This document shows, piece by piece, positions 19,446 through 64,000 of a stretch of DNA of 64,000 bases (its first letter is position 1; each line of letters opens with the position of its first letter). The stretch is taken from NCBI RefSeq assembly GCF_018977255.1, contig NW_024704805.1, forward strand, positions 248,001 through 312,000, in the 5' to 3' direction. Position numbers and translations under genes: made by a program. Source of the stretch: Callorhinchus milii (Eukaryota). A model generated the notes under the pieces. It did no database searches and was not told the DNA's origin. It worked only from the letters and a program-made list of their open reading frames with translations.

Positions 19446-20091
19446 ATGAAGCAAAATATCAAGGCAACATTTATTATTTAGAGTATAATGACATCATTCT
19501 TATGTAAGTAGGGAATGACTCTCTCTCTCTCACTGTATCTTTATCTCAGTGACTCTCAATGAATCTCAGTCAATCTCTCTCTCAGTCTCTCCTTCAAAAA
19601 ACAACGTCCCTACACATTATAATATATTTTCCTCCTTAGTATTTGTGTCTCCCTTAGTCACTCTATTAGTGTCTCCATCAAATCACAAAGTCCCGACACT
19701 TGATAATATATTCACTCGCAGTCTTTCTGTTCCCTTCTTTCAGTCTTTCTCTCGCTCAGTCTCTCTCTCTAATAACAAGAATAATTGTTAGTAATATTAT
19801 TATAATCACAGATACTTTGGCTGACAGCGATGTATCACAGAGACCCCAGACCGTGACACAGCTTGAAAATGGAAACGTATCCATGGAGTGCACCACCACT
19901 GAGTCGGGTCCAACTTTTCAGTGGTACACACATGATGGAAACGGCTCCATCCTGTTCTTGGTTTTGGGAAAAAGAGACATAACAGTGAAGGACAGGGTAA
20001 GAGCTTTGGCTAATACAAAACAGAGAAGCTGCACTCTAACAATCCAACACGTGCGAGTGTCAGACACCGCCACTTACTTCTGTGCGGACAG
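19446..20091 (+). pseudogene. TCR V with intact V exon (19812-20091) but a nonsense codon in the leader
   Basis: Leader 19446-19503 has TAG at codon 12 where the paralogs at 24496 and 26918 have TTG. V exon: TLADSDVSQRPQ...MEC...FQWYTH...DTATYFCADS. RSS: CACAGTG 20092-20098, 23 bp, ACGAAAACA. Confidence 0.85.
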
Positions 20092-20240
20092 CACAGTGAT
20101 GTGTGTCTAAGAGGGACCTGTACGAAAACATGCTGAGGTTACTGGAGCTCAAGGTTTAAAGCACTCGCCTCGCAAACGAGAGACCTGGGTTGATTCCCGG
20201 CAGGGCAAAACATTGGACATGTTTCCTTACTCCTTGTTGC

Positions 20241-20555
20241 TGAATCCTGTAGCTCAGTCGTTAGGGCACTCGCTTTGCAAGCGAGAGAACTGAGTTCAAT
20301 TCCAGGCAGGGCGAAACCTTGGGCAAGTTGCCTTACCCCAGACGCCTAATAATAATCCCTCCAAAAACCAAAAACAATAATAAATCGGTTATTTTTAATC
20401 TCCGACTGTTTGTGGGACATTGCTGTGCGCAATTGGCTGCCGCGCTCGCCCACAAATGTACAGTTAATTCACTTTACAGTGTGTTCTGTGAAGCGCTGTG
20501 GGTCGTCCTCCCGACTTGAAAAGCGCGATATCAAATGCAAGGATTATTATTATTA
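20241..20555 (+). mobile_element. tRNA-derived SINE, near full length
   Basis: Near-identical to 57309-57627; preceded by an older truncated head directly after the V RSS. Confidence 0.85.
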
Positions 20556-26917: not shown

Positions 26918-27375
26918 ATGAAGCCGATTTTCAGCACTACGTATATTATTTTGTATGTAACAATAAAGCTTTGGTGTAAGTAGTGTATGAATTTGGATAA
27001 ACCAATTCTTTTTACCCTCTAAATAATTACAGCTTATCGCGGCAGACACTTTACTAATTCCTTTGCGAGTATGTTAATTTCTGTTATTTTTCCAGGTATC
27101 TTGGCTGAAAGTGATGTTTCACAGTCACCTCAGGCCATGACAGGGAATGAAAATGGAAATGTATCTATGGAGTGCACCACCACTGTGTCCAGCCCAAACT
27201 TTCATTGGTACACACAGTATGGAAACGGTTCCATCCGGTTCTTGGTTTTGGGAAAAAGAGACATCAGTGAGAATGACAGGATAAGCGCTTTGGCTAATAC
27301 AAGGGAGAGAAACAGCACACTAACAATCCAAAATCTTCGTGTGACAGACAGCGCCACTTACTTCTGTGCAGAAGG
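26918..27375 (+). CDS. TCR alpha/delta V gene segment, apparently functional (leader 26918-26975, V exon 27096-27375)
   Basis: MKPIFSTTYIILYVTIKLW + CILAESDVSQSPQ...MEC...FHWYTQ...DSATYFCAEG. RSS: CACAGTG 27376-27382, 23 bp, GCAAAAACA. Confidence 0.93.
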
Positions 27376-29148
27376 CACAGTGCTGTGTGTCTAAGAGGGA
27401 CCTGTGCAAAAACATGCTGAGGTTCCTGCAGCTCAATGTTTAGAGCACTCGCTTCGCAAGTGAGATAATTGGGTTCAATATCGGGCAGTGCAAAATGTTG
27501 GCCAAGTTTCGATACTCCACATGCGTCTGTATATCGAGCAGTAAGTCGGAATATGGTTGTTAGTTGACTGACGGATCGTTTTTCCGATGGTAATAATTCC
27601 TATAAATAGAGAAAAAATTCAATCCACAACTGTTTGTGGGACACTGCTTCGCGCAAATGGCTGCGACATTTCGACCATAACATAATCAGTCAATTTACTT
27701 CACCGTACAGTCTACGAAATGCTTTGTATCATCGAATAGGTGATAGAGCGCTATATTAAATGCAAAGATCCTTATTATTTTTAATGTGTTACTGAGGCGG
27801 GACTAGGAAACGATTCATAGCAGTTTGGATGATCTCTTTTTCGGGTGTAATAATCCATCAGCAAAATGGATGACTCGATCAAAGACTGTTTGTGAGACGC
27901 TGCAGTATGCAATTGGCTGCCAGGTATTGTCCAGAAAATACACTTTCGATAAACTTTACAGTGTATCCTTTGAAGACCGTACAATCGAATCGGACATGTG
28001 GTAAAGCGTTATGTTAATTACAAGCGCTTTTATTACAACTCACAGGTTGGTTAGATAATCATATGCATGGAAATGGTTTCCAGATATGTCAGACACCAGG
28101 CTAACAAAAAACACATGTTTATGTATGGAGGATCATTCCCCGAATTCAGTCGTACAATACAATAATTTGTAGAAAGTGTCCAGCCGTCTGCACACACTCA
28201 GGGCTTCCACTTAATTCCTCGTCCTACCTCGTTTTAACCATCTATATCACAATAATTCTTGACATTTGATACAGCGCTTCATCTCGTCTCCGCGATGCCT
28301 CACAGCACTGCAGAGAGTACAGTATAATGTGTCGTGACTGTGAATTTTATGGGGGAAACTCGGGAACCAATTTCACACAACAGTCGCGGTTTCAGCGAAA
28401 AACTTTTGAGAGGTTGTTATACCCGTCAACAGGACTTGTTTTTCAAATGTGCTCACCACGTCTAGCACTGTTTGTGAGACAACTTGCGTCCACATGGGCT
28501 GCCGCATTTAGTCCACATAACAAACAGTCACTACAGTTTAATGCAAAAGCTGAGAAGCGCTATGAGAGGTCACAGTAATGTGATCAGGAACTATATCAAA
28601 TGCACTGATTACTGTCACTATAGAAGCAGAGATGTGAAAAATCTGCTGTTTGTGAAGGAACGGGAGGATTATCCTGCCAACAGACAGTTGGCATAAATAA
28701 GCCTGGACATGAGTAATAAAAGAGAATTAATAGGTACATGTCCAGAATGTAGCCGAACATAGATTCACATGCTTCTAGCCCTGGTTCAAAGTTAAGTAAT
28801 CAGGATGAGTCCTTCTAGTGAACACAAATGTGGGACACATGTATAAGTTTTGTTCAAACTTAATGAGGGTTTAACGTGATGCATGTGTCAGACACCCGGT
28901 TCAAAAGTGACATGTCAGTAATGGAAGAGAACCATTGGAGGATCGAGATGGTAGAGCAGAGAAGATGATGCATCATGACAGAGGCACAACGTTTGTACAT
29001 AACCCTCAGACCTGCTGCCTCACAGTATATGGCAACTTCTTTTATATCATTTCTTACTCAGCTCATCACTGCATCGTACTTCCTCCCAGTCAACATTCTC
29101 CAACTACGCCATCAACGCACTGTCAACACCCGTTGCCATTAAATACAT

Positions 29149-47665: not shown

Positions 47666-48327
47666 CAAACAAATAATGCGACTTGGATGTAATACAGCGC
47701 ATGTTCTGTCCATTGAGGCGCGTTAAAACGCATAAAAGGATATCATGTAAAGTGTGCACCATGCTGGCTCCCTCCTCGTCCTGCTCTGTGTCCCCCTGCA
47801 GCACCCAATCCCTGTATCACACTCTCTAAACTCAAAGACTCCAACTACTGCCCCAACATATGGACTCCACCCTAAATTTTTCCTCCTCGCTGCCTTGCAC
47901 GGCGTCCTCAGCCAGACGAGTAGCTCCATTATTTTTCATTCCCGACTCTCAGTAAAGCCACTCTCTACATCACACAATCTTCTCCCAGTCGCAGAGTAGG
48001 TTTATACTTCCTGAAATTGGTGTTTCGTCAATTGTCCATTTAATCTTAATTGAGTTACCCTCAAATCCCACACATCTACAACCTGCTCTGGGGCAAAGTT
48101 TGTTTGTTCCCTTTAGTTTCAGTTAGTTTTAGTCCCTTACCTCAGGTAGAGTCAACCCCCAACCAAACCAAACCCCGTCCACCCCTCAAAGCCGCCGACA
48201 CCAGCCACGAAGTGACGCTGTTCATCACAAATGAACCAAATCTCAAACGCTCTTACAGGACAGTCCTGTGTTACTCACAGTCACTCTGAGGTGTCCGGGG
48301 CTGACGGTGTCTCCGAGCGGTGAGAGG

Positions 48328-49037
48328 ATGTCTCTCCTCTGTGTCTCCATCTCCTTCCTCTTCTTACAATGTAAGTGTTTGTTTCCATTAAAAATCACCA
48401 CACAGCACCAGAGAATGTCATTACAGTGTGCGATATAATAATAATAATACTTGCTTTGACATAGCGCCTGTCACTTCGATGAGGCGTCTCAAAGCGCTTC
48501 ACAGTGTATACTGTAAAATGAATTGTCCGCGCTTCTTGTCGGCGAAACACGGCAGGCGATTGTGATCAATTATCTTACTCTCATTATATTATATATGATA
48601 ATTCTTTATGTAAATCGATAATGATATTACATGTCATGGTTATCAATTGATATCAATCGCATACTAAGCCAAGCTTTGGGATGTCATTTTAATCGAAGTG
48701 GTCAAGATACAAGATGATTCAAACTGATTTAAGATTTTAAAATATTTTCAGATGTTTTCAGTCTCACAGTGAAGCAGACGCCATCGTCTCTGAGGAAACA
48801 AGAATGCGAATCTTTGACCATCAACTGCGCTTTTCTATCAGAATGGTATGAGAATATCCGGAGACTGAATTTCTTTTGGCAGTTCTCGAATGGGAGACAT
48901 TGGAAGAGCATTAGCCATGGAGGACGATTTGTTGTAAAGACGGACACGGGATCAAAGACGTCTGCTTTGCAAATTAATGATTTGAAAGTTGAAGACAGCG
49001 CTGACTACAGATGCAGAGCTCGATATGAGCGGAATAC
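48328..49037 (+). CDS. IgNAR-like V segment of NAR-TCR cassette 1 (leader 48328-48370, V exon 48752-49037)
   Basis: MSLLCVSISFLFLQ + YVFSLTVKQTPSSLRKQECESLTINCAF...GGRFVVKTDTGSKTSALQINDLKVEDSADYRCRARYERN. VNAR-type motifs (ESLTINC, GGRF, INDLxVEDS) and only 61 aa between the canonical Cys (no CDR2 strands). RSS: CACAATG 49038-49044, 22 bp, ACAAAAAGG. Confidence 0.93.
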
Positions 49038-49391
49038 CACAATGCTGTATCGGGACTTCCGACAATACAAAAAGGCCCTTCACCCACCTCATAGAAATAA
49101 TATAGAAAATGTGAACTTGCCAAATAATTCAACGCACATTCCCCATTCGTTTCTGAAAAGCTGTGATGTTGAATAACACTTCGTTGGAGAAGCAATCATC
49201 ATTTATGAATAGTTAGGAAAAGAGAGTGTATACAAATTGACATCGGCTGCTTTTCACATTAACAAATTTAATCATAAGAGACAGATGGATTGTCCAGTCC
49301 CACTTGGTAAATATTCAATAGAATTTTACTTGTTATGTCATTGATTGATCATTTCAAAGGCAGAAATTATTTCAATTGTTTCGCAAAACAG

Positions 49392-49464
49392 CCATTTTGC
49401 ACTGACATAAAATACTGTGCTGGTTTTCTGGGAAGCCACAATGGAAAACCTTAGCGCAAATACA
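49392..49464 (+). other. D segment of NAR-TCR cassette 1 (coding 49420-49436) with 12/12 RSS
   Basis: CCATTTTGC, 12 bp, TACTGTG [CTGGTTTTCTGGGAAGC] CACAATG, 12 bp, GCAAATACA. Confidence 0.85.
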
Positions 49465-49779
49465 GTACCGCTATTTTCATCAAAAAGCATTGGACGTGAA
49501 CACTGATTACTGCGTAAACTTTTCATTTTGTTCAATGTGTCGAATGCTTGCTTCCGAAATTAATTATATTAAGCATGAATTTCTGGAGTTATTTAAAGGA
49601 AGAGATTCTCTGTGCGTTGCACGTTTATTTTATTTCTGTGGAAATATTATTGAAGCTAAACGTGACTTGGCAGATGAAAAGTACGGAGATGCGACAGCGG
49701 TGGAGAGATACGCACTAATGATCAATTTGTCAGAATTTAGCGGTTTTGGTGCCCGTGTGAAAGCATGATCTATAAGAAC

Positions 49780-49876
49780 AGTTTTTGTACCTTGTGGAAT
49801 GAGATCTGAGTGCCTGTGGTACATTGGAAAACAGAAACGAAAGATGGATCAGAAACCAAAGTAACTGTAACAAAAC
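49780..49876 (+). other. J segment of NAR-TCR cassette 1 (coding 49819-49876) with 23-RSS
   Basis: AGTTTTTGT, 23 bp, GCCTGTG, then VHWKTETKDGSETKVTVTK and a phase-1 donor GTGAGT. Confidence 0.85.
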
Positions 49877-50904
49877 GTGAGTGGGAATAAATTCTATTGA
49901 CATAAAACAAAAGAATATTAACCTGCATTTGTAAAACGCATTACTCGAAATAGTTATTTGCTATTTGCTATTTGCAAGTGTGCTATTGAAACAATCCACT
50001 TGACCAACCGTGAAAATCTGTATGTTTTTGATGTGGAAAAGTTTATTCTGTTTCCACTTCGAAGCGTATTTTTTCAATTGACCTACTTTAGTCCTTGTTT
50101 CGTAAAGTGAATGATTTTCTCTGGAGAGTAATTGCAAAGGACTATGCGCAGAGGACTTATTTCGTGTAAATTCGGGTAATCAATATATGTAGCCTTTGTC
50201 AGATAGAAATGTTGTCCCTAATCTCCTCTGTCCTCCCGAGGGGAAGGAAAAGGCGATCTAATCGGAAATGAATTGGCTCCAATGTGACATGAGTTGGAAG
50301 AACAGAGCAATAACTGAGGTTAGCTTCCTTCACCACTCTGCTCCCATTAGACCTGCTGGGAAAAGTGCAATAAATGGTAGGACTTTTCAAGCTGGACAGG
50401 ACATGCAGCCGATTAGTTAGTCAGAAAATTTTTTCATAAAAGCGTGTCATGACGCTTTCCTGTTTGAACAACGTGTGAATATTTGATGCAGGCGCAATGT
50501 CATGTGGGAACTAAATTCACAATTTGGATAATTTTAATTTTGATGGCTTCTGCCCCAGTTGAGCAAAGTATAAACATTGCATCGTTAATTATTAAAGCAC
50601 AGATTGGGGCCATTCAGACATTTTGAAGAGCTAACAGTCAGTCCCTTTCCCCATAACATTTTTACTCATATATTAAGAAATGTATCAATTGTTGCCAACA
50701 TATTCGGAGACAGAAAGTAGATAGCGCACCAGTGGTGATTTGTTTCTGTTTACTCTCTCGCTAGTTCAAATTACTGATGTACACTGTAACTGGTATCGTT
50801 GAGCTAATAATTATAACTTGCGTATACATAGTGCATTTTTCCATCTGGAGAGCATCCGAAACAAATGCATTCAGTTGGTTCGTGACCGAAAGAAATTCCA
50901 CTGA

Positions 50905-51699: not shown

Positions 51700-51998
51700 T
51701 GGGTCAGCAACCACGAATCGCAAGTTGAAGATAATTGGTCAAAGGTTCAGAGTGGAGAGAAGGAGAAATTATTTCAAATGAATGTTGCTATTAACTGCAA
51801 TGCACTGCCTGAAAGAGTCGCGGGAAGCAGATTCGATAATAAATTTCGGAAGGGAAAGGGAATAGATGCATCAAAATGAATGATAGAGTGTTATGCGACA
51901 CGAGTGGGGGAGTCGGGTTTAATTGAATAGCTCATTTCAAAGAGCCAATACAGGCAAGAAGGGCCGAATGTCCTCCTTCTGCATAATTCCATGATTCT
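51700..51998 (+). mobile_element. CR1-like LINE 3' end directly upstream of the supporting V acceptor
   Basis: Ends GGGCCGAATGTCCTCCTTCTGCATAATTCCATGATTCTA, matching the CR1 3' end at 43.9 kb. Confidence 0.65.
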
Positions 51999-52025
51999 AA
52001 GTAACCTGTAATTTGCATCCCGCAG

Positions 52026-52327
52026 GATCCAGTTGTACAGTTTCCCAGTCACCGCCTGAACAAACTGCTTTTGCTGGTGAGAGGATAAATTTACATTGCC
52101 AATACTCAGGATCCTGTGGACAAAATTTCAGCGTCTCCTGGTACCGTCGGTCCCCTGGTGAGGGACTGAAATACCTGCTCCACAGAAACCCCTCAGAAGA
52201 GGGAGGAAATTCCAATGGAGATCACATTTCTGCTTCTCTTGACACTGCCAAGAAAATCTGCGTTTTAACCATCACCGGCCTGGGGCTGACAGACTCCGCT
52301 ATGTATCACTGTGCACTCAGTCTGCAC
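52026..52327 (+). CDS. Supporting TCR delta V exon of NAR-TCR cassette 1 (no leader recognised)
   Basis: Acceptor CCCGCAG/GA is phase 1, compatible with the upstream J donor. SSCTVSQSPPEQTAFAGERINLHCQYSGSCGQNFSVSWYRR...KICVLTI...DSAMYHCALSL. RSS: CACAGTG 52328-52334, 23 bp, ACAATAACC. Confidence 0.88.
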
Positions 52328-53138
52328 CACAGTGATACACATCATAGGAAGCCTCGTACAATAACCCTCATCACAACCAAAGCTGGGAAACAGTACAGTG
52401 CAGTTTGTGACAGAGAGTGTAAGCAAACCCTTTCCAACTGCCACCGTGGTTTATACCTTATTCAGTTCATTTCAAATCAATTTGCTCATTTTCTGTTCTT
52501 TATATTTGTTTTTCTCCAATGTTTAGCAGAATTCGGCAAATGTTTGTTGCAATTCAGACATGTAATGATTAGTATTTGCACTAAAATATGCCTCACCTGC
52601 AGGAGCTCTCTGTTATAATAATTTCCACTGTTCTTTCTACCATTGCTATAGATAATTGTCGGCGAAGTTCATATTCGCAAGGCTATGGGGAGAGAGTAGT
52701 GGATTGAAATTGAATGGGATAACTCTTTTCAGAGAGCCGACACTGACACAATGGCTGGAATGACATTCTTCTGTGCTGCAAAGTTATAAGTTTGTATGAC
52801 TAAAGATATTTATAAAATTATAATGCCATCTCTGCGGGAAACGTCCCAAAGGGTTTCACATGGTACAATTTAAAGTGAAGTGACTTTGTGATTTGTTGGG
52901 TAACGCGGTAGCCAATTTGTTAATAGTAAGTTCCGACAAATATTCGTGAAGCAAAACACAGTTTTTTCTTAATTAGTAGATTGTCATTCATGAAAATTAG
53001 AGAAAGAAACATCCTTCTCGTTTCGAAAACTGCAGTGGGAACTTAAAGTCCATCTGAACATTCATAGGTGGCCGAATGTATTAATACTGTGATATAAGAA
53101 GCAATGAATCTAAGTAACCTGTAACATACATCTCGCTG

Positions 53139-53441
53139 GATCGAGTTATACATTTTTCCAAATCACCGCCTGAACAAACTGCTGTTGCTGGTGAGAGGAT
53201 AAATTTACATTGCCAATATTCAGGATTCTGTGGACAGGATTTCAGCGTCTCCTGTTACCTTCAGTCCCCTGGCGAGGAACCGAAATATCTGTTCCACAGA
53301 AAACTCTCAGGAGAGGGAGGAAATTCCAATGGAGATCACATTTCTGCTTCTCTTGACACTGCTAAGAAAATCAGCGTTTTAAACATCGCCGACATGCGGC
53401 TGACAGACTCCGCTCTGTATCACTGTTCACTCAGTCTGCAC
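53139..53441 (+). pseudogene. Decayed tandem duplicate of the supporting V
   Basis: Highly similar to 52026-52327, but the acceptor AG is TG, a +1 insertion in FR1 gives TGA, and the FR2 Trp is Cys. RSS intact: CACAGTG 53442-53448, 23 bp, ACAATAACC. Confidence 0.92.
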
Positions 53442-53491
53442 CACAGTGATACACATCAGAGGAATCCTCGTACAATAACCCTCATCACAAC

Positions 53492-55164: not shown

Positions 55165-55455
55165 AAGGGCAGCGTTGAACCACCACAGATGAAGTGTCTG
55201 TTACAGCAGGCCAGACTGCAAACCTGAGCTGCATCAACTCTGCTGATTTCACGAATGCTTTAATGATCTTGTAGTGTCACTATCAACTGGAACGTCCGCT
55301 GTACACACTGCGACAGGAGTTTGATGGAAACACTTTTAGTGGTGAACTCCACGCAACATGTCACCGCTCATCTGGACACGAGCAGGAATAGATCCACTGT
55401 ACTTGTGCTCCGCATGGCTCCAACTGACACGGAAACACTTTATTGTGCCATTACA
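55165..55455 (+). pseudogene. Highly decayed TCR V pseudogene
   Basis: DEVSVTAGQTANLSC...stop...frameshift...HVTAHLDTSRNRSTVLVLRMAPTDTETLYCAIT. Heptamer-like sequence at about 55454 and a perfect nonamer ACAAAAACC at 55538. Confidence 0.75.
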
Positions 55456-57110
55456 CACATATAGCGCTTGATCACGACATCGAGGCCTGTTAAAGCGCTT
55501 CACAGAATACACTGTTATTGTTAGAATACATCAATGTACAAAAACCTCCAAAGAGGAGAGAAAGGGCTTCATCTCCGCACAGATGTTATTCCTGACAGTT
55601 GACCTATTTGACAAGTTGTGACTTTGATGCTTCGTCACTCATGAGGAAACACCTGACTTACTCCAAACCACAAGCAAAATGTGATAGAGTGGTTCATGTG
55701 GGGAAATAGTGAAAGAAATAATGCTAATACTTACATTGAACATAGCGCATTATCCCAATTTTGAGATGTCCCTAAGCGCTTCATAGTTTATACTGTAAAG
55801 TGAATTCATTGAATTAACTGAAAGATGCAGTTGCTGCGCTTCACAATATATCAATGTCATACGACCAGCTTTCTCAATATATTCATTGGTATTTTGGAGC
55901 ATTCGGCAGAGTGAAGGTTAACTGTACACATTTTAGCGAGATAATGTGTTGATATTCATGTTTTGTAAGTGAATAATAATTTAAATGGGTATCTATTTTC
56001 AGTCCAACCTCTTAACTGATACTGTATGTCACACTTCGTTTACACATTAAAAGTTTACACCTTCTGAATTTATTTCACAGTTTGACGACATTTTGCAAAA
56101 TAACCAGAGGGGAGACGAGAAGACAATCTTTAACAAATAATCTTGTTACGGTCCAGAATGCACAGTCTGAAAATATGCTGGACCCAGATTCGATAGCTCT
56201 AGATCTTGAAAGGAATTGGACAGTTAGCTACAAATGAAAACATATGTGGAAACAGTGGGGGATTGGGATGGATTGATAGCTTTTCTCTATCACATCATCT
56301 ACATGGGTCAGACCTGTAAGTCATGTCTAAAATGGAAATAATATTGTGCAAAATTAATAGCTAATTCAACTTTGCATTATACAGAGCGCTTTATCACGAC
56401 TTCGAGGCGTGCTAAAGCGCTTACAGAATATACTGTGAACTGAATCATCTACATGTTATGGGCGAAATACGGCAGTCCATTTTGCGTCCCACAAACAACT
56501 GTGGATTAAATGACCAATTTGTAATTAATATTTTTTTGAAGGTTTTATTAACCCCGAAAATATTTGATGGAGCTCAGACGACGTGGGAGTTATTATGTGG
56601 GTGACCCAGGCTGCTATTCTGATAGGTAATCAATTATGACAAATAATAGTCAACAGCGATTGCATAGCTTACAATCGTGGAGTCCTGTACCTCAGTGGTT
56701 AGAGCGCTCACCTCGGAAGCGAGAGACCCTGTTCCGATTCCCGGAAAAGAGAAACATTGGGCGAGTTTCCTGACTCCACACACAACACGTAGGAACCCGT
56801 TTGGTACTCGACTGGCGAATCGCAGTTTCTCAGTTAATAGTACTTTCAAAATAAAATATTATTGATAATCTTATCGCTTAGTCTTCGACTCTTTGTGGGA
56901 CATGGCTGTGCACATTTGGCTGCCGCGTTGAGGCCATAAAAGACGCAGTCAGTTCGCTTTGCGTACAGAGGGTGAAGCGATTTCAGTCGCCTTCACGACG
57001 CGTCAAGGCGCCGCAGCCAATGAGACTGTGGTTCCGCTAATGACGGTAATCACTGCGGGTTATCAGCAAACTGATGGCACAGACATAACCACACAGACTG
57101 AAGAGCAGCA

Positions 57111-58390
57111 ATGAGGCTGTTTGCTGTCTGTCTTGTGCTGGGAACCTTTATGGCAGGTGAGGCCTTGTTGAGCTAATTCAGTGTTGCTGCTGATGGTCAG
57201 CTCCATGTCAATAACAACCGGAGTAAGAAAACCGGTAGCTCAGTGTACAGAGCTCTCGCCCAACAAGCGACAAGATCTGGGTTCGATTCCCGGGCAGTGT
57301 GAAACCAAGTGGAGTCCTGTAGCTCAGTGGTTAGAGCACTCGCTTTCCAAGCGAGAGACCTGAGTTCAATTCCAGGCAGAGGGCGAAACCTTGGGCAAGT
57401 TTTCTTACTCCACACACCTAATAATAATCCCTACAAAAACAAAAACAATAATAAATTGGTCATTTTAAATCTACGACTGTTTGTGGGACATTGCTGTGCG
57501 CAATTGGCTGACGCGTTCGCCCGCAACTATAGAGTCAATTCACTTTACAGTGTGTTCTGTGAAGCGCTTTGGGACGTCCTCTTGACGTAAAAAGCGCTAC
57601 ATTAAATGCAAGGATTATTATTATTATAAGGCAAGTTTTCTCACTCGATACATACAGACACACTTCTGTTCATCAAGCTGTAAGCAGCATGCACATTGGT
57701 ATACAGCGCGTGGGTAATAAACCGTCCAAATAATAATTCTCCCTTCATTCATTTTCAGTGGATTGCCGGGTCACTTTTCCGGCGAGAATAACACATTAGG
57801 TTTTTTTTCAATAATAATTGGATAACGGATTCCATAACCGGTCGTGTTATACTGATGTACAGCAATTTTGCCCACCAATTTCACTTTATAGTGTACTTTA
57901 TGCAGCGCAAAAAGACGTCTCAACACCGGGAAATTGCGCCGTAAAAAATATTATTTTATTCTTAAAAAATGACATGTGTATCGGTCCTTTACTTTGTGGA
58001 GGATAACCCAATATGTGGTCCGAATGTCAGCCAAGGAGCAAATAATATACCGCGGTGCTCTTCCATGTTTAATACAGAACTCTGTGGTGGGGACACTGTC
58101 AATCAGAAAGAAGCCTCGAGGCTTAAGAGAGAAGCAGAAACCGTGAAGTTAAAGTGTACATATTCCACGATTCAAAGCAATTACCGTCTCTTCTGGTACC
58201 GACGTTACCCAGTCAAGCAGCCAGAGTTTATAGTTGTGCTATATTCTTCGGATGACGATGAAGACAAAGGAGAAGGGTTTGGAAACCGTTTCTCTGCTCA
58301 GCTACAGAAATCCAACTCCACCACCAGTTTAACCATCTCTGAGCTGGTGTTGTCTGACAGCGCTGTGTATTACTGCGCCTTTACTGTCAC
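57111..58390 (+). CDS. TCR alpha/delta V gene segment, apparently functional (leader 57111-57156, V exon 58078-58390)
   Basis: MRLFAVCLVLGTFMA + ELCGGDTVNQKEAS...LKC...LFWYRRY...DSAVYYCAFTV. RSS: CACAGTG 58391-58397, 23 bp, ACAAAAACT. Confidence 0.95.
57309..57627 (+). mobile_element. tRNA-derived SINE, near full length, in the V intron
   Basis: Head with A and B boxes, a CCTTGGGCAAGT motif, body, and an L2-like tail with (ATT)n; preceded by a truncated older head at about 57230-57300. Confidence 0.88.
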
Positions 58391-59299
58391 CACAGTGATA
58401 GACTGCACTGCAGGTCTCGTACAAAAACTGCCTTCACTTTGTACATGGGATGATCTGTCTGTTGAAGTGTGTGCGGAAACTTGCGGATCTTGAGGCCCTG
58501 CGGGGAGCAGATATGTCTGTAGCGAGACTGAGAGGAAACCACATTCACCGCACATCAACTTGTCAGCTGAACATTTGCACAATCATTGTAAATCGATCGA
58601 ATTATCGCTTTTGTGGGGGATATTAAGCCCGTCATATTTAATATTGGTAGCTCCATCCATGTCTGTTCAAGTGTATGTTAAGTATCTCACGTAACGACTC
58701 GAAACGATTATCGATATCCTGACAGAGCGAAATAAGTGTCCGGGACGGTAGTGTTCGTGCAGGCGCTGAGGTTGGGTAGCACTGATCGTGGTAGGAGGAT
58801 ATATAACAACAAATAAATTGTCTCCGTCCACTCGCTTCCATCTCAAGAGCTTCCCTTACAACTGTGTCTTTAGGGATCATCCCTTGTCATCACAACAGGC
58901 TCTCCACCCCTCTCTCTTCCCAAACTGCAGCTCGAATGCAAAAGCCTTCACGCTCAAGTGACCTTGGACGTTCTGCAGTAACAAAAAGCGCTATTTAATA
59001 CAATTTGTTGGTGTAATTGTTGATTCAACGACGCTTTATGAAATGAAAGGATTACTAAGATTCTTTCTCACCAAAATTTTATTCACATCAGTTTTTACAC
59101 CGTTTTGCGGTGGATCCGAATTGAATGAACATGAAAATGAGTGTAGCCCAACGGCCATATTTAGCAGTCTGACAACAAGATCACGGGGTAATTTTGTCAA
59201 GAAAACACTGCTGTGGTGCCACGGATGTGATGTTGAAACCCGTCACACACTTTCCATCATCAAACTCTGATGGCAAACGCTTCTTGCTGAAGAGCGACA

Positions 59300-60209
59300 A
59301 TGTGGCTGTCCATTGACTACCTTCTTCTATTGAACTTTATGTCAGATGAGGTTGGGAAACATACAGTGCAGATTAAGATTGATATAGAGGCTTTTTCATC
59401 AGTTGGATGATTCATTTTGTTTGGCAGTCCTGCCTAGTCACCCAAGTTGGGTTTGCGACTTGACATGTTAGGAACGGAAAGCTAATAACAGTAATTCTTA
59501 TATTTGATAAAACGCCTTAACATAAAGAGGCGTCTCAAAGCACGTCTTAGTATTCATTGACAAGTCAAATGACCGTATATGTTGTGAGAGAAAGGCGGCA
59601 GCCCACTGGACACAGAATACTTCCACAGAAAGTGGTGCATTGAGAGACCACGTTTATTTTTTATCCATTATTATCCGACGAAAAACAATCCGCCAATCGA
59701 CTAACAACTGGGTTCCTCCTTATTGCTTGGTTAGTAGGGCGTGTTTTTAGTAGTAAGGAAACCTGCCTAAGGTTTCTCCCTGTCCTGCCCGGGAATCGAA
59801 CTCTGGTTCTGTCGCTTGCTGGGCGAGTGCACAAACCATTTACCTACAGGACTGCAATAGCGCCATGTTTGATGTTCATCCATTCCTCTAGTTGCAGATG
59901 TGATGCTGGGAGATTCAGTCTGACAGCAGACAGCGGGGCTGAGCAAACAAGAGGGAGACACAATTAGTCTGAGCTGCTCATATACCACCAGCTCGTCCTT
60001 TGCTGCTCTGTATTGGTACAGATATCACCCAGGCTTCGCTGCCCAATACATTCTCTCTCGTGATACCGATGGAAATGACAACACTGCAGATTTCGCCAAA
60101 GGGCGTTTCACTTCACAGCTTGACAAGAATCAGAGACAAACCACATTAAACATATGCTGTGTCATTATTACTGACGCTGCCACTTATTATTGCGGCTGAA
60201 GTACAGAAG
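59300..60209 (+). pseudogene. TCR V pseudogene with a perfect RSS
   Basis: Leader 59300-59345 (MWLSIDYLLLLNFMS) with donor GT changed to AT; V exon 59898-60209 has TGA in FR1 and TGA after YYCG. RSS: CACAGTG 60210-60216, 23 bp, ACAAAAACC. Confidence 0.92.
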
Positions 60210-60828
60210 CACAGTGCTGCAATTCAATGACTTCCCTGTACAAAAACCCAACCAACGTGGAGCCTTCTAGCTCAGTGGTAAGAGCACTCGCCTCGCAAGC
60301 GAGAGACTTGTGTTTGATTCCCAGCCGAGCAAAATATTGGGCAACTTTCCTTACTCCACACACCTCAGTTTGTTTAGCAGTAAACAGGATCACGATTGTT
60401 AGTCGATTAATGGATTGCTGTTCTGGGGATAATAAGCTCTTTATAAAATAATAATAATTAGGTCACTCAGAACAAGAATACACACTGACATTCTACTGAA
60501 ATGCCGACAGATGTCGACATATAACAATACAATAAAACTGACTTTCAACAGCAGTTTTCACATTAGGAAGATACCTCATTCGTGCAATAATGTGGAGTCT
60601 TTTAGCTTAGTGGTTAGATCGCAAGTTTCGCAAGCGAGAATATCTGAGTTCGATCTCGGGTGGGGAGAAACGTTAAGACCCACTCGCCTTTGTATATACA
60701 ACAGTAAATAGGAACACTTATGTTATTCGTTTGTAGATCAACTTACCGGCGGCCATAATCCCTTAAAATAAACCAATTACATGTTTATTTTAAAACATGT
60801 CAATAATTTCATAAGTAAAATATTAATT

Positions 60829-60978
60829 NNNNNNNNNNNNNNNNNNNNNNNNNNNNNNNNNNNNNNNNNNNNNNNNNNNNNNNNNNNNNNNNNNNNNNNN
60901 NNNNNNNNNNNNNNNNNNNNNNNNNNNNNNNNNNNNNNNNNNNNNNNNNNNNNNNNNNNNNNNNNNNNNNNNNNNNNN
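60829..60978. other. Assembly gap (150 N)
   Basis: Run of N in the sequence. Confidence 1.
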
Positions 60979-61130
60979 ACTTTCCTGGGGAATCAAATAA
61001 ATATAGTTGACGACAGAGACAGAGAGACAGAGAGAGCGAGAGAGAGAGAAAGACAAACAAACAGAAAGAGAAACACACAGAAATACAGACATAGAGATAG
61101 AAAATTCGAGTTAATTAATAATAATGATAA

Positions 61131-61447
61131 TAATAGTAATAATCCTTGCATTTGATATAGCGCTTTTCACGTCGGGAGGACGTCCCAAAGCGCTTCACAG
61201 AACACACTGTAAATTGAATTGACTGTATATTTTTGGGCGAACGTGGCAGCCAATTGCGCACAGCAATGTCCCACAAACAGTCGTAGATTGAAAGTGATCA
61301 ACTTGTTATTGTTTTTGGTTTGATGAGCGATTATTTTTAGGCTCTGTGTGGAGTAAGGAAACTTGCCCGAGATTTCGCCCTCTGCCTGGAATTGAACTCA
61401 GGTCTCTCACTTGCAAAGCGAGTGTTCTAACCACTGAGCTACAGGAA
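61131..61447 (-). mobile_element. tRNA-derived SINE, near full length
   Basis: Near-identical to 128-456. Confidence 0.85.
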
Positions 61448-61848
61448 TCTGTAGTAGTTTCTTTATGTGCCTTTCCGAATTCTCAATAAAGCCCCTCTCC
61501 ACATCACACAGCCGTTGACCCTCTCAGTGACAGATTACACTCCCTCCCGTTGGCTTCCCCGTCAATTGTCCATTTAAAATAAAATGATCCTGGAACAGTC
61601 ATCCCCAAATTCCCCTCTATGCCAAATGCCCTCCGGCACTGTTATTCAGCCACTCTCCTCATGTATGTTCTTCCCCTCCACACGCAAATCACTACCCCGC
61701 CCTCCCCTGAAAGCAACTGACACCAGCCATGATGTGACGTTGTTCATCACAAATAAACCAAGTCCCCAACGCTCTTACAGAACAGCTCTGTTTTACTCAC
61801 AGTCACTCTGAGGTGTCGGGACTGACGGTATCTCCCAGCGGTGGAAGG

Positions 61849-62547
61849 ATGTCTCTCCTCTGTATCTCCATCTTCTTCCTATTCTTACAATGTAAGTGGT
61901 TGTTTCCATAACACAGCACTACACAGCACCAGTGAGTATCATCAGTAGTATAGTTAAACAATATAAATTATCCTTGAAATTGATGTATATCGTTACGATG
62001 TGGATGGGACGTCTCAGTTCGCTTCAAATAATAGTTTGTGCACTGAATTTTGTGGTCGAAACGCGGCAGTCAATTATTTAGCTTTAATTTCATTATATAT
62101 TATAATCATGTGTATTAATTAATATTATAATTATACTACATATTCCTGATTATATTATATCAACTGATATCAAGGCAGATCTAGCCAAAACTTGTAATGG
62201 AATTCTAATAGAATTGTTCAATGTTGAAAATCTGTTAAACTGATGTAATATTGGGTATAATTTTCAGATGTTTTCAGCGCCTCAGTAACGCAGACACCAT
62301 CCTCCATTATGAGAGAAGAATGCGACGCTTTAACCATCAACTGTGTCTTCTCACCAAGTTGTCGAGACGAATTCACAAGTATGGAGTTCTTTCGGCAATT
62401 CCCAATTGGAACAGATTGGAAGCCCATCCCTCGTGAAGGGAGGTTTGCTGTAAAGACAGACACGGAATCGAAGTCGTCTTCTCTGGAAATTAATGACTTG
62501 CAAGTTGAAGACAGCGCTGACTACAAATGTACAGCTCGAATTTGGAC
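61849..62547 (+). CDS. IgNAR-like V segment of NAR-TCR cassette 2 (leader 61849-61891, V exon 62268-62547)
   Basis: MSLLCISIFFLFLQ + YVFSASVTQTPSSIMREECDALTINCVFSPSCRDEFTSMEFFRQ...EGRFAVKTDTESKSSSLEINDLQVEDSADYKCTARIW. RSS: CACAATG 62548-62554, 22 bp, ACAAAAAGC. Confidence 0.93.
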
Positions 62548-62899
62548 CACAATGCCGTATCTGGGCTTCCAACAATACAAAAAGCCCCTTCACCAACTCG
62601 CATGTAAAACACAGATATTGTGAACTTGTCAATGAGTTCAATGCACGTTCCCCATTAGGATGTGATGTACAATGCTGTTTAATAGCACTGCCTTTGAGAC
62701 ACGACCAATGGTTATGAAAACTTAGGAAAAGTGAACGAGTTTGAATCTGATGTTAGAACTTTGCTCGTATTCGTGTACATAACAGCTTATTGCAAGAGAC
62801 AGATTGTAAAGAATAATATTCAAAAGAATGTTCCACATTACATCATTGATTGGCCATGTGTAAATGGCAGAAAATATTCCAATTGATTTTCCATCCATT

Positions 62900-62971
62900 G
62901 ATTTTTGTATTGACATTAAATACTGTGTTCGCTGTAGGATGGTCACATTGGACAACATCAGCACAAATACT
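62900..62971 (+). other. D segment of NAR-TCR cassette 2 (coding 62928-62943) with 12/12 RSS
   Basis: GATTTTTGT, 12 bp, TACTGTG [TTCGCTGTAGGATGGT] CACATTG, 12 bp, ACAAATACT. Confidence 0.9.
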
Positions 62972-63286
62972 GCACAGTTATTTTTGTGAAAATATATGAG
63001 ACTTAATCACTGAAAACTGTGTCCTATTTAATGATGCTGAAGGTGACCAAAGTTTGCTTTCAAAATTAATTATTTGAAGCAGACATTTTCTGGAATTATT
63101 TGTAAAGATTTATTCAATGAGACGTGCACTCTATCTGTGTTTGGTAGCAATAGTATTGAAGATAAACATGATTTATACAAATGAAAGCTATGAAGATGGG
63201 ACAGTTTTGGAAAGATAGGAATCAATGACCATGTTGTCAGCATTTGTTTGTTTTCGTGCCAGTATTAAACCAAGATCTCATAGAAC

Positions 63287-63384
63287 AGTTTTTGCACCTC
63301 GTAGAACGAGATCTGTGGGACTGTGGTATGGACACACAGAATACACAGAAGATGGAACTGGAACCAAAGTAACTGTAACGAAAT
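63287..63384 (+). other. J segment of NAR-TCR cassette 2 (coding 63326-63384) with 23-RSS
   Basis: AGTTTTTGC, 23 bp, GACTGTG, then YGHTEYTEDGTGTKVTVTK and a phase-1 donor GTTAGT. Confidence 0.9.
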
Positions 63385-64000
63385 GTTAGTGAGAAAAAAA
63401 TTCTATCGAATTGCAATTACATTTTATTCACAATAATATGTAAAATGCATTTTTCGAACTCATTGCTTCCAATTGTATGCCACTGTGCCATTTTAGCAAT
63501 ACACTTGAGCAATCTTAAAAAAAATGTTTATAATGTGGAAAACATTATGCAGCTTCCAGTGTGAAGCTTGCTTCTGAAATAACCTGCTTTTATTTCCGTG
63601 TTACGTAAAGTCACCGACTTTGCCTGGACATCGTTTCCAGCTGAATATGCCCAGAGGACGTATTTCAATTTAATGGATGTAACCAATTCACGTAGCCTCT
63701 GCCAGATCGAAATACTGTCCAGAATCCCCTCTATCCACCCGAGCGGAGTAAAAAGGCGAAATCCTCGGAACTGAATTGGCTCCAAGGTTACATGATTTGG
63801 AAGAGCAGTACACTAACTGGGGAAATAGTCTCTTACCACTCCGCTCCCATTAACCCTGCAAGGAAAAGTGGCAATGTTTTGTACGTTTTTCCAAGCTGGA
63901 CTAGCAGTGGCATAGTTCGCAAGAGATTATTTTCAACGACAAGCTTTGCAGCATGTTTCCAATGGGGGTGAATAGTGTAAATTCTAGGGGCATATTGTTA

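Follow-up and report, generated by a model that had tools for sequence, protein, structure and literature searches.

A second, diverged NAR-TcR V-D-J cassette predicted among TCR alpha/delta V segments of Callorhinchus milii

The NAR-TcR, a doubly rearranging T-cell receptor (TCR) delta chain, was reportedly described in nurse shark by Criscitiello, Saltis and Flajnik in 2006, and it is to our knowledge the oldest known instance of a T-cell receptor that carries a single antibody-like V domain. In Callorhinchus milii, the elephant shark, it forms a multigene family with the same hallmarks (Venkatesh et al. 2007, PMC1845163), which in the NAR-TcR V are a leader, an a-b loop cysteine and a WYRK motif that has lost its canonical Trp (PMC1845163). 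The 2014 genome paper noted NAR-TCR in C. milii and reported IgNAR and IgW as lacking (PMC3964593), NAR-TcR in this species is thought to predate IgNAR (PMC3964593), and a 2025 study mapped NARTCR V genes among the TCR alpha/delta V genes of several cartilaginous fishes. Here we describe a 64-kb stretch of the C. milii genome (64,000 nucleotides of contig NW_024704805.1, forward strand; the window), in which positions 61849–63384 appear to hold a germline NAR-TcR cassette of variable (V), diversity (D) and joining (J) segments, cassette 2, and a related unit, cassette 1, occupies 48.3–49.9 kb.

In mammalian IgH, the recombination signal sequences (RSSs) have 23-bp spacers at V and J and 12-bp spacers on both sides of D, while the D segments of TCR delta and beta are of the 12/23 type and their J segments carry 12-RSSs. 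The elasmobranch IgNAR clusters, the source of the VNAR domains, carry three D segments. Another three-domain TCR chain is TCR mu of marsupials and monotremes, in which an N-terminal antibody-like V with its own V(D)J stands on a supporting V (PMC3457774). TCR mu differs in using VH-related V domains together with a C of its own in tandem clusters, and in marsupials its supporting V is joined in the germline (PMC3457774); it is regarded as convergent with NAR-TcR (PMC3457774). The family-defining features with which we compare the locus were drawn from PMC1845163, PMC3964593, PMC3457774, PMC12227049 and PMC5931798.

The NAR-type V segments and their locus

A six-frame motif scan followed by tblastn revealed about 20 V-type exons in the window, all on the + strand. 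In the RSS scan, a + strand 23-RSS follows nearly all conventional V genes, and most conventional V genes have a phase-1 leader exon 450–610 bp upstream. The window looks like a region of V segments in the TCR alpha/delta locus of a cartilaginous fish, and it contains no D-delta, J-delta or C-delta. The database relatives of its V sequences are from C. milii, with the exception of one sequence, P0007, discussed below.

Two V exons are set apart from the others. The exons at 48752–49037 (V1, in cassette 1) and 62268–62547 (V2, in cassette 2) share 57% identity with each other and 23–28% with the remaining V genes of the window. A tblastn search found no further NAR cassette in 1–48 kb of the window. 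A preliminary description of this DNA had proposed that 61849–63384 is a second, diverged NAR V-D-J cassette, a proposal that is supported by the anatomy of the segment, its conservation relative to cassette 1, purifying selection on the V framework, and similarity to VNARs. We read the segment, with a probability of about 0.85, as a germline NAR-TcR V-D-J cassette that is placed among TCR alpha/delta V segments and is paralogous, through an old tandem duplication, to the one at 48.3–49.9 kb.

The sequence of V2 is that of a NAR-type domain. V2 matches the Pfam V-set family (E 8e-8), and its best matches in the PDB are shark VNARs (E 2.6e-13 to ~1e-10, residues 5–90, with 85 aligned residues in the top match). 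In comparisons with two VNARs, V1 and V2 are 41–44% identical over ~84 residues with a single gap and score 60–67 bits (62 bits and 41–42% identity for V2), whereas the window's conventional V genes and the supporting V described below are 21–27% identical with 9–22 gaps and score 23–37 bits. The two canonical cysteines are 62 residues apart in the NAR V domains and 71–73 apart in most other V genes of the window. In addition, both NAR V domains have a cysteine at the same position of the a-b loop (REEC in V2, KQEC in V1), and both lack the canonical Trp of WYRK (MEFFRQF in V2, LNFFWQF in V1).

V2 has an extra cysteine in complementarity-determining region 1 (CDR1; SPSC, 62343–62351), and one reading frame of the D segment of cassette 2 (D2) encodes a cysteine; neither is found in cassette 1. 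Because of these two cysteines, a CDR1–CDR3 disulfide of the IgNAR type-II kind is possible in the product of cassette 2.

Anatomy of cassette 2 and its relation to cassette 1

The boundaries 61849–63384, as first proposed, are exact, and each leader, V, RSS, D and J element that had been listed is found there, on the + strand. Upstream of the cassette, a conserved block (61694–61848) contains a TGACGT (CRE-like, that is, cAMP response element-like) motif and is a putative promoter or 5′ untranslated region. The leader exon (61849–61891) begins with an ATG at 61849, encodes MSLLCISIFFLFLQ plus 1 nt, and ends at a phase-1 donor, GTAAGT. A 376-bp leader intron (61892–62267) with the acceptor ttttcag separates it from the V2 exon (62268–62547), which is open over 93 codons and includes the motifs REEC, SPSC and FFRQ and the pair Cys22/Cys84. 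V2 is thus equipped with its own leader peptide.

The V2 exon is followed directly by an RSS (62548–62585) composed of CACAATG, a 22-bp spacer and ACAAAAAGC. The 16-nt D2 core (62928–62943; TTCGCTGTAGGATGGT), in which the cysteine frame reads tt cgc tgt agg, is flanked by two 12-RSSs. Specifically, the 5′ signal (62900–62927) consists of GATTTTTGT, a 12-bp spacer and TACTGTG, with 6/7 heptamer and 8/9 nonamer matches, while the 3′ signal (62944–62971) consists of CACATTG, a 12-bp spacer and ACAAATACT, with 6/7 and 7/9 matches. An alternative 3′ signal with a 23-bp spacer was rejected, since by hand count its nonamer matches at 3–4/9 positions, with 4/9 at D2, versus 6–7/9 for the 12-bp reading. 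The 23-RSS of J2 (63287–63325) comprises AGTTTTTGC, a 23-bp spacer and GACTGTG, and J2 itself (63326–63384) encodes YGHTEYTEDGTGTKVTVTK with a KVTVTK core, followed by a final T that leaves the exon in phase 1. The post-J2 intron starts at 63385 with the donor GTTAGT and continues past the window end at 64000.

The RSS geometry of cassette 2 is therefore 23/12-D-12/23, with all signals correctly oriented. This IgH-type arrangement would permit V-D and D-J joins and forbid a direct V-J join. Single RSS-like matches are common, with 113 matches in the window under a loose scan; the four RSSs of cassette 2 exceed chance because they are correctly oriented and lie at homologous positions in both cassettes. 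Cassette 2, like cassette 1, has a single D segment, and its own D and J with their RSSs are predicted to be competent for a separate V(D)J rearrangement. The geometry resembles that of mammalian IgH and differs from that of mammalian TCR delta, where D is 12/23 and J has a 12-RSS.

Cassette 1, the reference copy, spans 48172–49876 on the + strand and has the same arrangement. It is composed of a conserved upstream block (48172–48327), a leader (48328–48370), V1 (48752–49037) with its RSS (49038–49075), D1 (49420–49436) with a 12-RSS on either side, and J1 (49819–49876), which is preceded by its RSS (49780–49818) and ends AAA C before the donor GTGAGT. In blastn, 61694–63901 aligns with 48172–50397 at 70.2% identity over 2274 columns (E = 0), and MAFFT gives the same register.

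This identity is unevenly distributed. It is highest in the leader exon (93%), the upstream 155 bp (85%) and the RSSs (V, 87%; D 5′, 82%; D 3′, 79%; J, 82%), and falls to 60% in the leader intron, 61% in the V-D spacer, 67.5% in the D-J spacer and 65–66% in the post-J intron (63385–64000 versus 49877–50502). Distances are kept within a few bases: the leader intron is 376 bp in cassette 2 and 381 bp in cassette 1, the V-to-D distance is 380 and 382 bp, respectively, and the D-to-J distance is 382 bp in both. The earlier claim of a shared leader, promoter block, RSS spacers and spacing thus agrees with the alignment. So does the claim that V, D and J have diverged, with identities of 71% (nucleotide) and 57% (amino acid) for the V exon, 41% for the D core between its conserved RSSs, and 68% (nucleotide) for J. 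The post-J homology that had been described is also seen, with 63680–64000 being 66% identical (69% ungapped) to ~50177–50502 and the BLAST-level match reaching as far as 63901.

Between V1 and V2, dS is 0.65 and the overall dN/dS is 0.42, a ratio that drops to 0.31 outside CDR1 and rises to 1.07 within it (Nei-Gojobori), indicating that the V frameworks of both cassettes are under purifying selection. The pattern as a whole carries the signature of an old duplication in which regulatory, splicing and recombination signals and the frameworks would have been kept while the antigen-contacting parts diverged.

Cassette 2 thus has each NAR-TcR feature that can be seen inside the window: a VNAR-type V, a leader, the a-b loop cysteine, loss of the Trp, and D and J segments with RSSs. 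Its likeness to the described NAR-TcR extends to its site among TCR alpha/delta V segments and to the existence of a multigene family in C. milii, and nothing essential is different; the specifics of cassette 2 are the extra CDR1 cysteine of V2, the terminal T of J2 and the GTTAGT donor.

The supporting V and competing explanations

In cassette 1, the complete unit lies within the window. A 2150-bp intron leads from the J1 donor to a supporting TCR-delta-type V (supV1; exon 52027–52327, + strand), which has a phase-1 acceptor (cccgcag/GA TCC) and a perfect 23-RSS (52328–52366). supV1 matches the Pfam V-set family (E 1.6e-14), has a cysteine in CDR1 (SGSCGQ), and is 75–85% identical to at least 10 supporting-type V models of C. 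milii. No phase-1 leader is found within 600 bp upstream of supV1, where the conventional V genes carry theirs. Cassette 1 therefore shows the further NAR-TcR likeness of a J followed by a TCR-delta V that is leaderless and has a cysteine in CDR1. The 23-RSS of supV1 is the one usual for a V and would serve its joining to a TCR delta D. A PDB search with the supporting V was dominated by multi-domain single-chain variable fragment (scFv) and diabody chains and did not separate TCR-type from Ig-type V.

The predicted J1–supV1 junction reads ...KVTVTK-R-SSCTVSQSPPEQ. P0007, a 214-aa mRNA-like sequence, reads MSLLGVSISFLFLQ..., with a leader, and continues through a NAR V, ...KVTVTK-R-KSYTVSQSPPEQ... 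and a supporting V. Because P0007 reads NAR V, J and supporting V in succession, the J-to-supporting-V splice at the KVTVTK-R junction is seen in a related sequence, and the KVTVTK core is common to J2, J1 and P0007. P0007 is the product of a relative or paralogue, not of cassette 2.

Two additional cysteines occur in supV1, one at position 3 (SSC, 52033–52035) and one at position 78 (KKIC, 52258–52260); both are absent in the C. milii supporting V paralogues that we retrieved.

The J1-to-supV1 intron holds a signal-peptide-like open reading frame (ORF), MQAQCHVGTKFTIWIILILMASAPVEQ (the MQAQ ORF; 50486–50567), with a weak phase-1 donor, GTATAA. It is identical at 24/29 positions to the N-terminus of the C. 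milii model A0A4W3HC63, which joins an MQAQ-like start to a NARV2-like V exon via the second AG of the V acceptor. The MQAQ ORF may represent either an alternative leader or an artefact of gene modelling. As a leader of the supporting V we rejected it, since no supporting V model of C. milii includes it and its GTATAA donor is weak, and we consider it very doubtful that it serves as an alternative first exon, such that holocephalan NAR-TcR supporting V segments would not be strictly leaderless. If it did, the MQAQ exon might allow expression of a supporting V that lacks the NAR domain; another possibility is that, as in A0A4W3HC63, it would feed the following NAR V exon via the second AG acceptor.

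From the anatomy of the cassettes and the published NAR-TcR system we infer the following steps for cassette 2. In developing gamma/delta T cells, RAG would join V2, through its 22/23-bp RSS, to the 12-RSS of D2, and the other 12-RSS of D2 to the 23-RSS of J2. Transcription would start in the conserved upstream block, and the leader would be spliced onto the V-D-J exon. The phase-1 donor after J2 would then be spliced to a leaderless supporting TCR-delta V downstream, which would itself have undergone rearrangement to D, J and C of TCR delta. The resulting product would be a three-domain delta chain, in which the membrane-distal, unpaired NAR V domain binds antigen. The NAR V would probably be tied to the supporting V by a putative interdomain disulfide between its a-b loop cysteine and the CDR1 cysteine of the supporting V.

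The supporting V expected for cassette 2 would most likely lie a few kb past the window end. The preliminary description had put its start near 65.5 kb, an estimate made by analogy with cassette 1 and its intron of 2150 bp. A further, indirect indication comes from P0013, an automatic UniProt model of C. milii (A0A4W3GGH8). P0013 is identical at 17/17 residues to window positions 59339–59389, an arbitrary ORF in spacer DNA, and at 25/25 residues to 59930–60004, the N-terminal half of the pseudogene V at 59.9 kb. Its next 65 residues (positions 43–107, starting NFSVSWYRQSPGEELKCLF; NFSVSWYRQSPGEELKCLFRRKPSGEEGNPTGDNISASLDTAKKISILTIAGLRLTDSAMYHCAL) correspond to a V of the supporting type, which on our own count is ~77% identical to supV1 and is found nowhere in the window. 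The exact matches fit a window that comes from C. milii or a near-identical relative. Because P0013 starts with exons identical to the window and then runs on into a V that the window lacks, a supporting-type V is expected downstream of 60004 on the same strand, and because the 150-bp run of N at 60829–60978 is too short to hold a V, it should lie beyond 64000, past cassette 2.

P0013 is one of several UniProt/Ensembl-derived C. milii 'Ig-like domain' models (P0002, P0009, P0013 and P0015) that are chimeras of neighbouring V-segment halves, and the automatic annotation of the locus in C. milii is unreliable.

Several points weigh against our interpretation of cassette 2 as a NAR-TcR unit. First, its supporting V is outside the window and is one that we infer, and P0013 is a chimeric automatic model that could in principle stem from a near-identical duplicate elsewhere in the genome. 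Second, no protein identical to V2 is found in the protein collection that was searched, whose best match is 63% identical, and V2 apparently lacks a UniProt entry. Third, the splice end of J2 departs from that of J1: the J2 donor is GTTAGT, with T at +3, versus GTGAGT, with G at +3, in cassette 1, and the last exon base of J2 is T versus C in J1. supV1 starts with GA after its acceptor, and so do most C. milii supporting V segments, to judge by the read-through or junction residues of P0003, P0004, P0012, P0016 and P0007, so the terminal T of J2 joined to such a start would create a TGA stop at the junction. The terminal T and the GTTAGT donor could affect function.

These splice features are at the centre of the explanation that competes best, namely that cassette 2 is a recombination-competent dead-end copy in which J2 is not productively spliced to a supporting V and which adds nothing to the repertoire, owing to the weakened donor, the junction TGA, or a lost or degenerate supporting V. 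Such a fate would be in keeping with the abundance of decayed V segments nearby, including the pseudogenes at 55.2 and 59.9 kb and an acceptor-less copy of the supporting V at 53.15 kb. However, cassette 2 retains intact versions of its leader, V exon, J and all four RSSs, its RSSs score equal to or higher than those of cassette 1, and a framework dN/dS of 0.31 at a dS of 0.65 indicates long-term constraint on both copies. Moreover, another C. milii NAR J has a terminal T before a good GTGAG donor (P0002, read-through '...VTVTKCE'), the supporting V model P0009 apparently starts with AT, which would give a TAT codon, and supV1 contains an in-frame alternative acceptor (tacag/TT). We regard a dead-end copy as unlikely and prefer the reading as a NAR-TcR cassette.

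A second explanation is that cassette 2 is an IgNAR-type heavy-chain cluster with constant exons after V-D-J. V2 is most similar to IgNAR V domains, the short CDR2-less V and the IgH-type 23/12-D-12/23 geometry are shared with IgNAR clusters, and the phase-1 donor of J2 is equally fit for splicing to a C exon. On the other hand, cassette 2 has one D segment rather than three, V2 lacks the canonical Trp of IgNAR and has the a-b loop cysteine specific to NAR-TcR, and the cassette is embedded among TCR V segments. In addition, the paralogous cassette 1, which shares the post-J intron, leads to a leaderless V exon with no C exon, and C. milii has been reported with NAR-TCR and without IgNAR and IgW (PMC3964593). 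The single D, the absent Trp and the V exon after the J of cassette 1 do not fit the definition of an IgNAR cluster, which we find scarcely credible for cassette 2.

An assembly artefact, whether a collapsed or duplicated haplotype or a mis-join at the N run (60829–60978), which lies 870 bp upstream of the homologous block, can be dismissed as highly improbable, since 70% nucleotide identity, 57% V amino-acid identity and a dS of 0.65 are far past allelic or assembly-duplicate divergence and the conservation pattern is that of selected paralogues.

Surrounding segments and the two-cassette map

The two cassettes are interspersed with other V segments, as first described. Of the three conventional V genes said to lie between them, V58.1 alone looks intact, and the other two are decayed. 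In V58.1 (57111–58429), the leader, MRLFAVCLVLGTFMA, lies at 57111, the V exon is open, and the 23-RSS at 58391 is perfect. Its leader is 975 bp upstream of V, because a ~320-bp repeat (57312–57627) resembling a short interspersed element (SINE) lies in the leader intron. SINE-like copies of this repeat, 87–93% identical, are also present at 130–453, 20242–20555 and 61127–61449.

V55.2 (55170–55460) is a pseudogene with a TAG in the Trp41 region and a frameshift, and the RSS scan found no RSS for it. V59.9 (59897–60248) is a pseudogene with a TGA in framework region 1 (GDSV*QQ) and a perfect 23-RSS (heptamer 7/7, nonamer 9/9).

A second supporting-type V also lies between the cassettes (53154–53441, + strand), with a perfect 23-RSS at 53442–53480. 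It is 90% identical in nucleotide sequence to supV1 (51991–52377 versus 53104–53491), and its frame is open and its CDR1 cysteine is kept; the AG acceptor is lost (gcag to gctg), and Trp41 is replaced by Cys. This copy (53154–53480) is probably a young tandem-duplicate pseudogene. A GC-rich insertion follows it at 53.5–54.1 kb.

Elsewhere in the window, a separate family of short V segments is found at 19832–20130 and 27116–27414, with a Cys22–Cys86 spacing of 64 and the motifs WYTHDGNGSI and WYTQYGNGSI. These segments are as compact as NAR V, yet they are ~25% identical to VNARs, and their 23-RSSs are normal.

Cassette 2 is another member of the known NAR-TcR family in a published genome. The current understanding of that family is unchanged, and what is refined is the annotation of the genome. 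The outcome is a map at base resolution that places two diverged units within 16 kb and covers the putative promoter block, leader, V, 12-D-12, J with its 23-RSS, and the phase-1 splice into a supporting V without a nearby leader exon. Such a map may serve as a substrate for repertoire studies, for understanding how IgH-type RSS geometry coexists with TCR delta rearrangement, and for mining holocephalan NAR V scaffolds.

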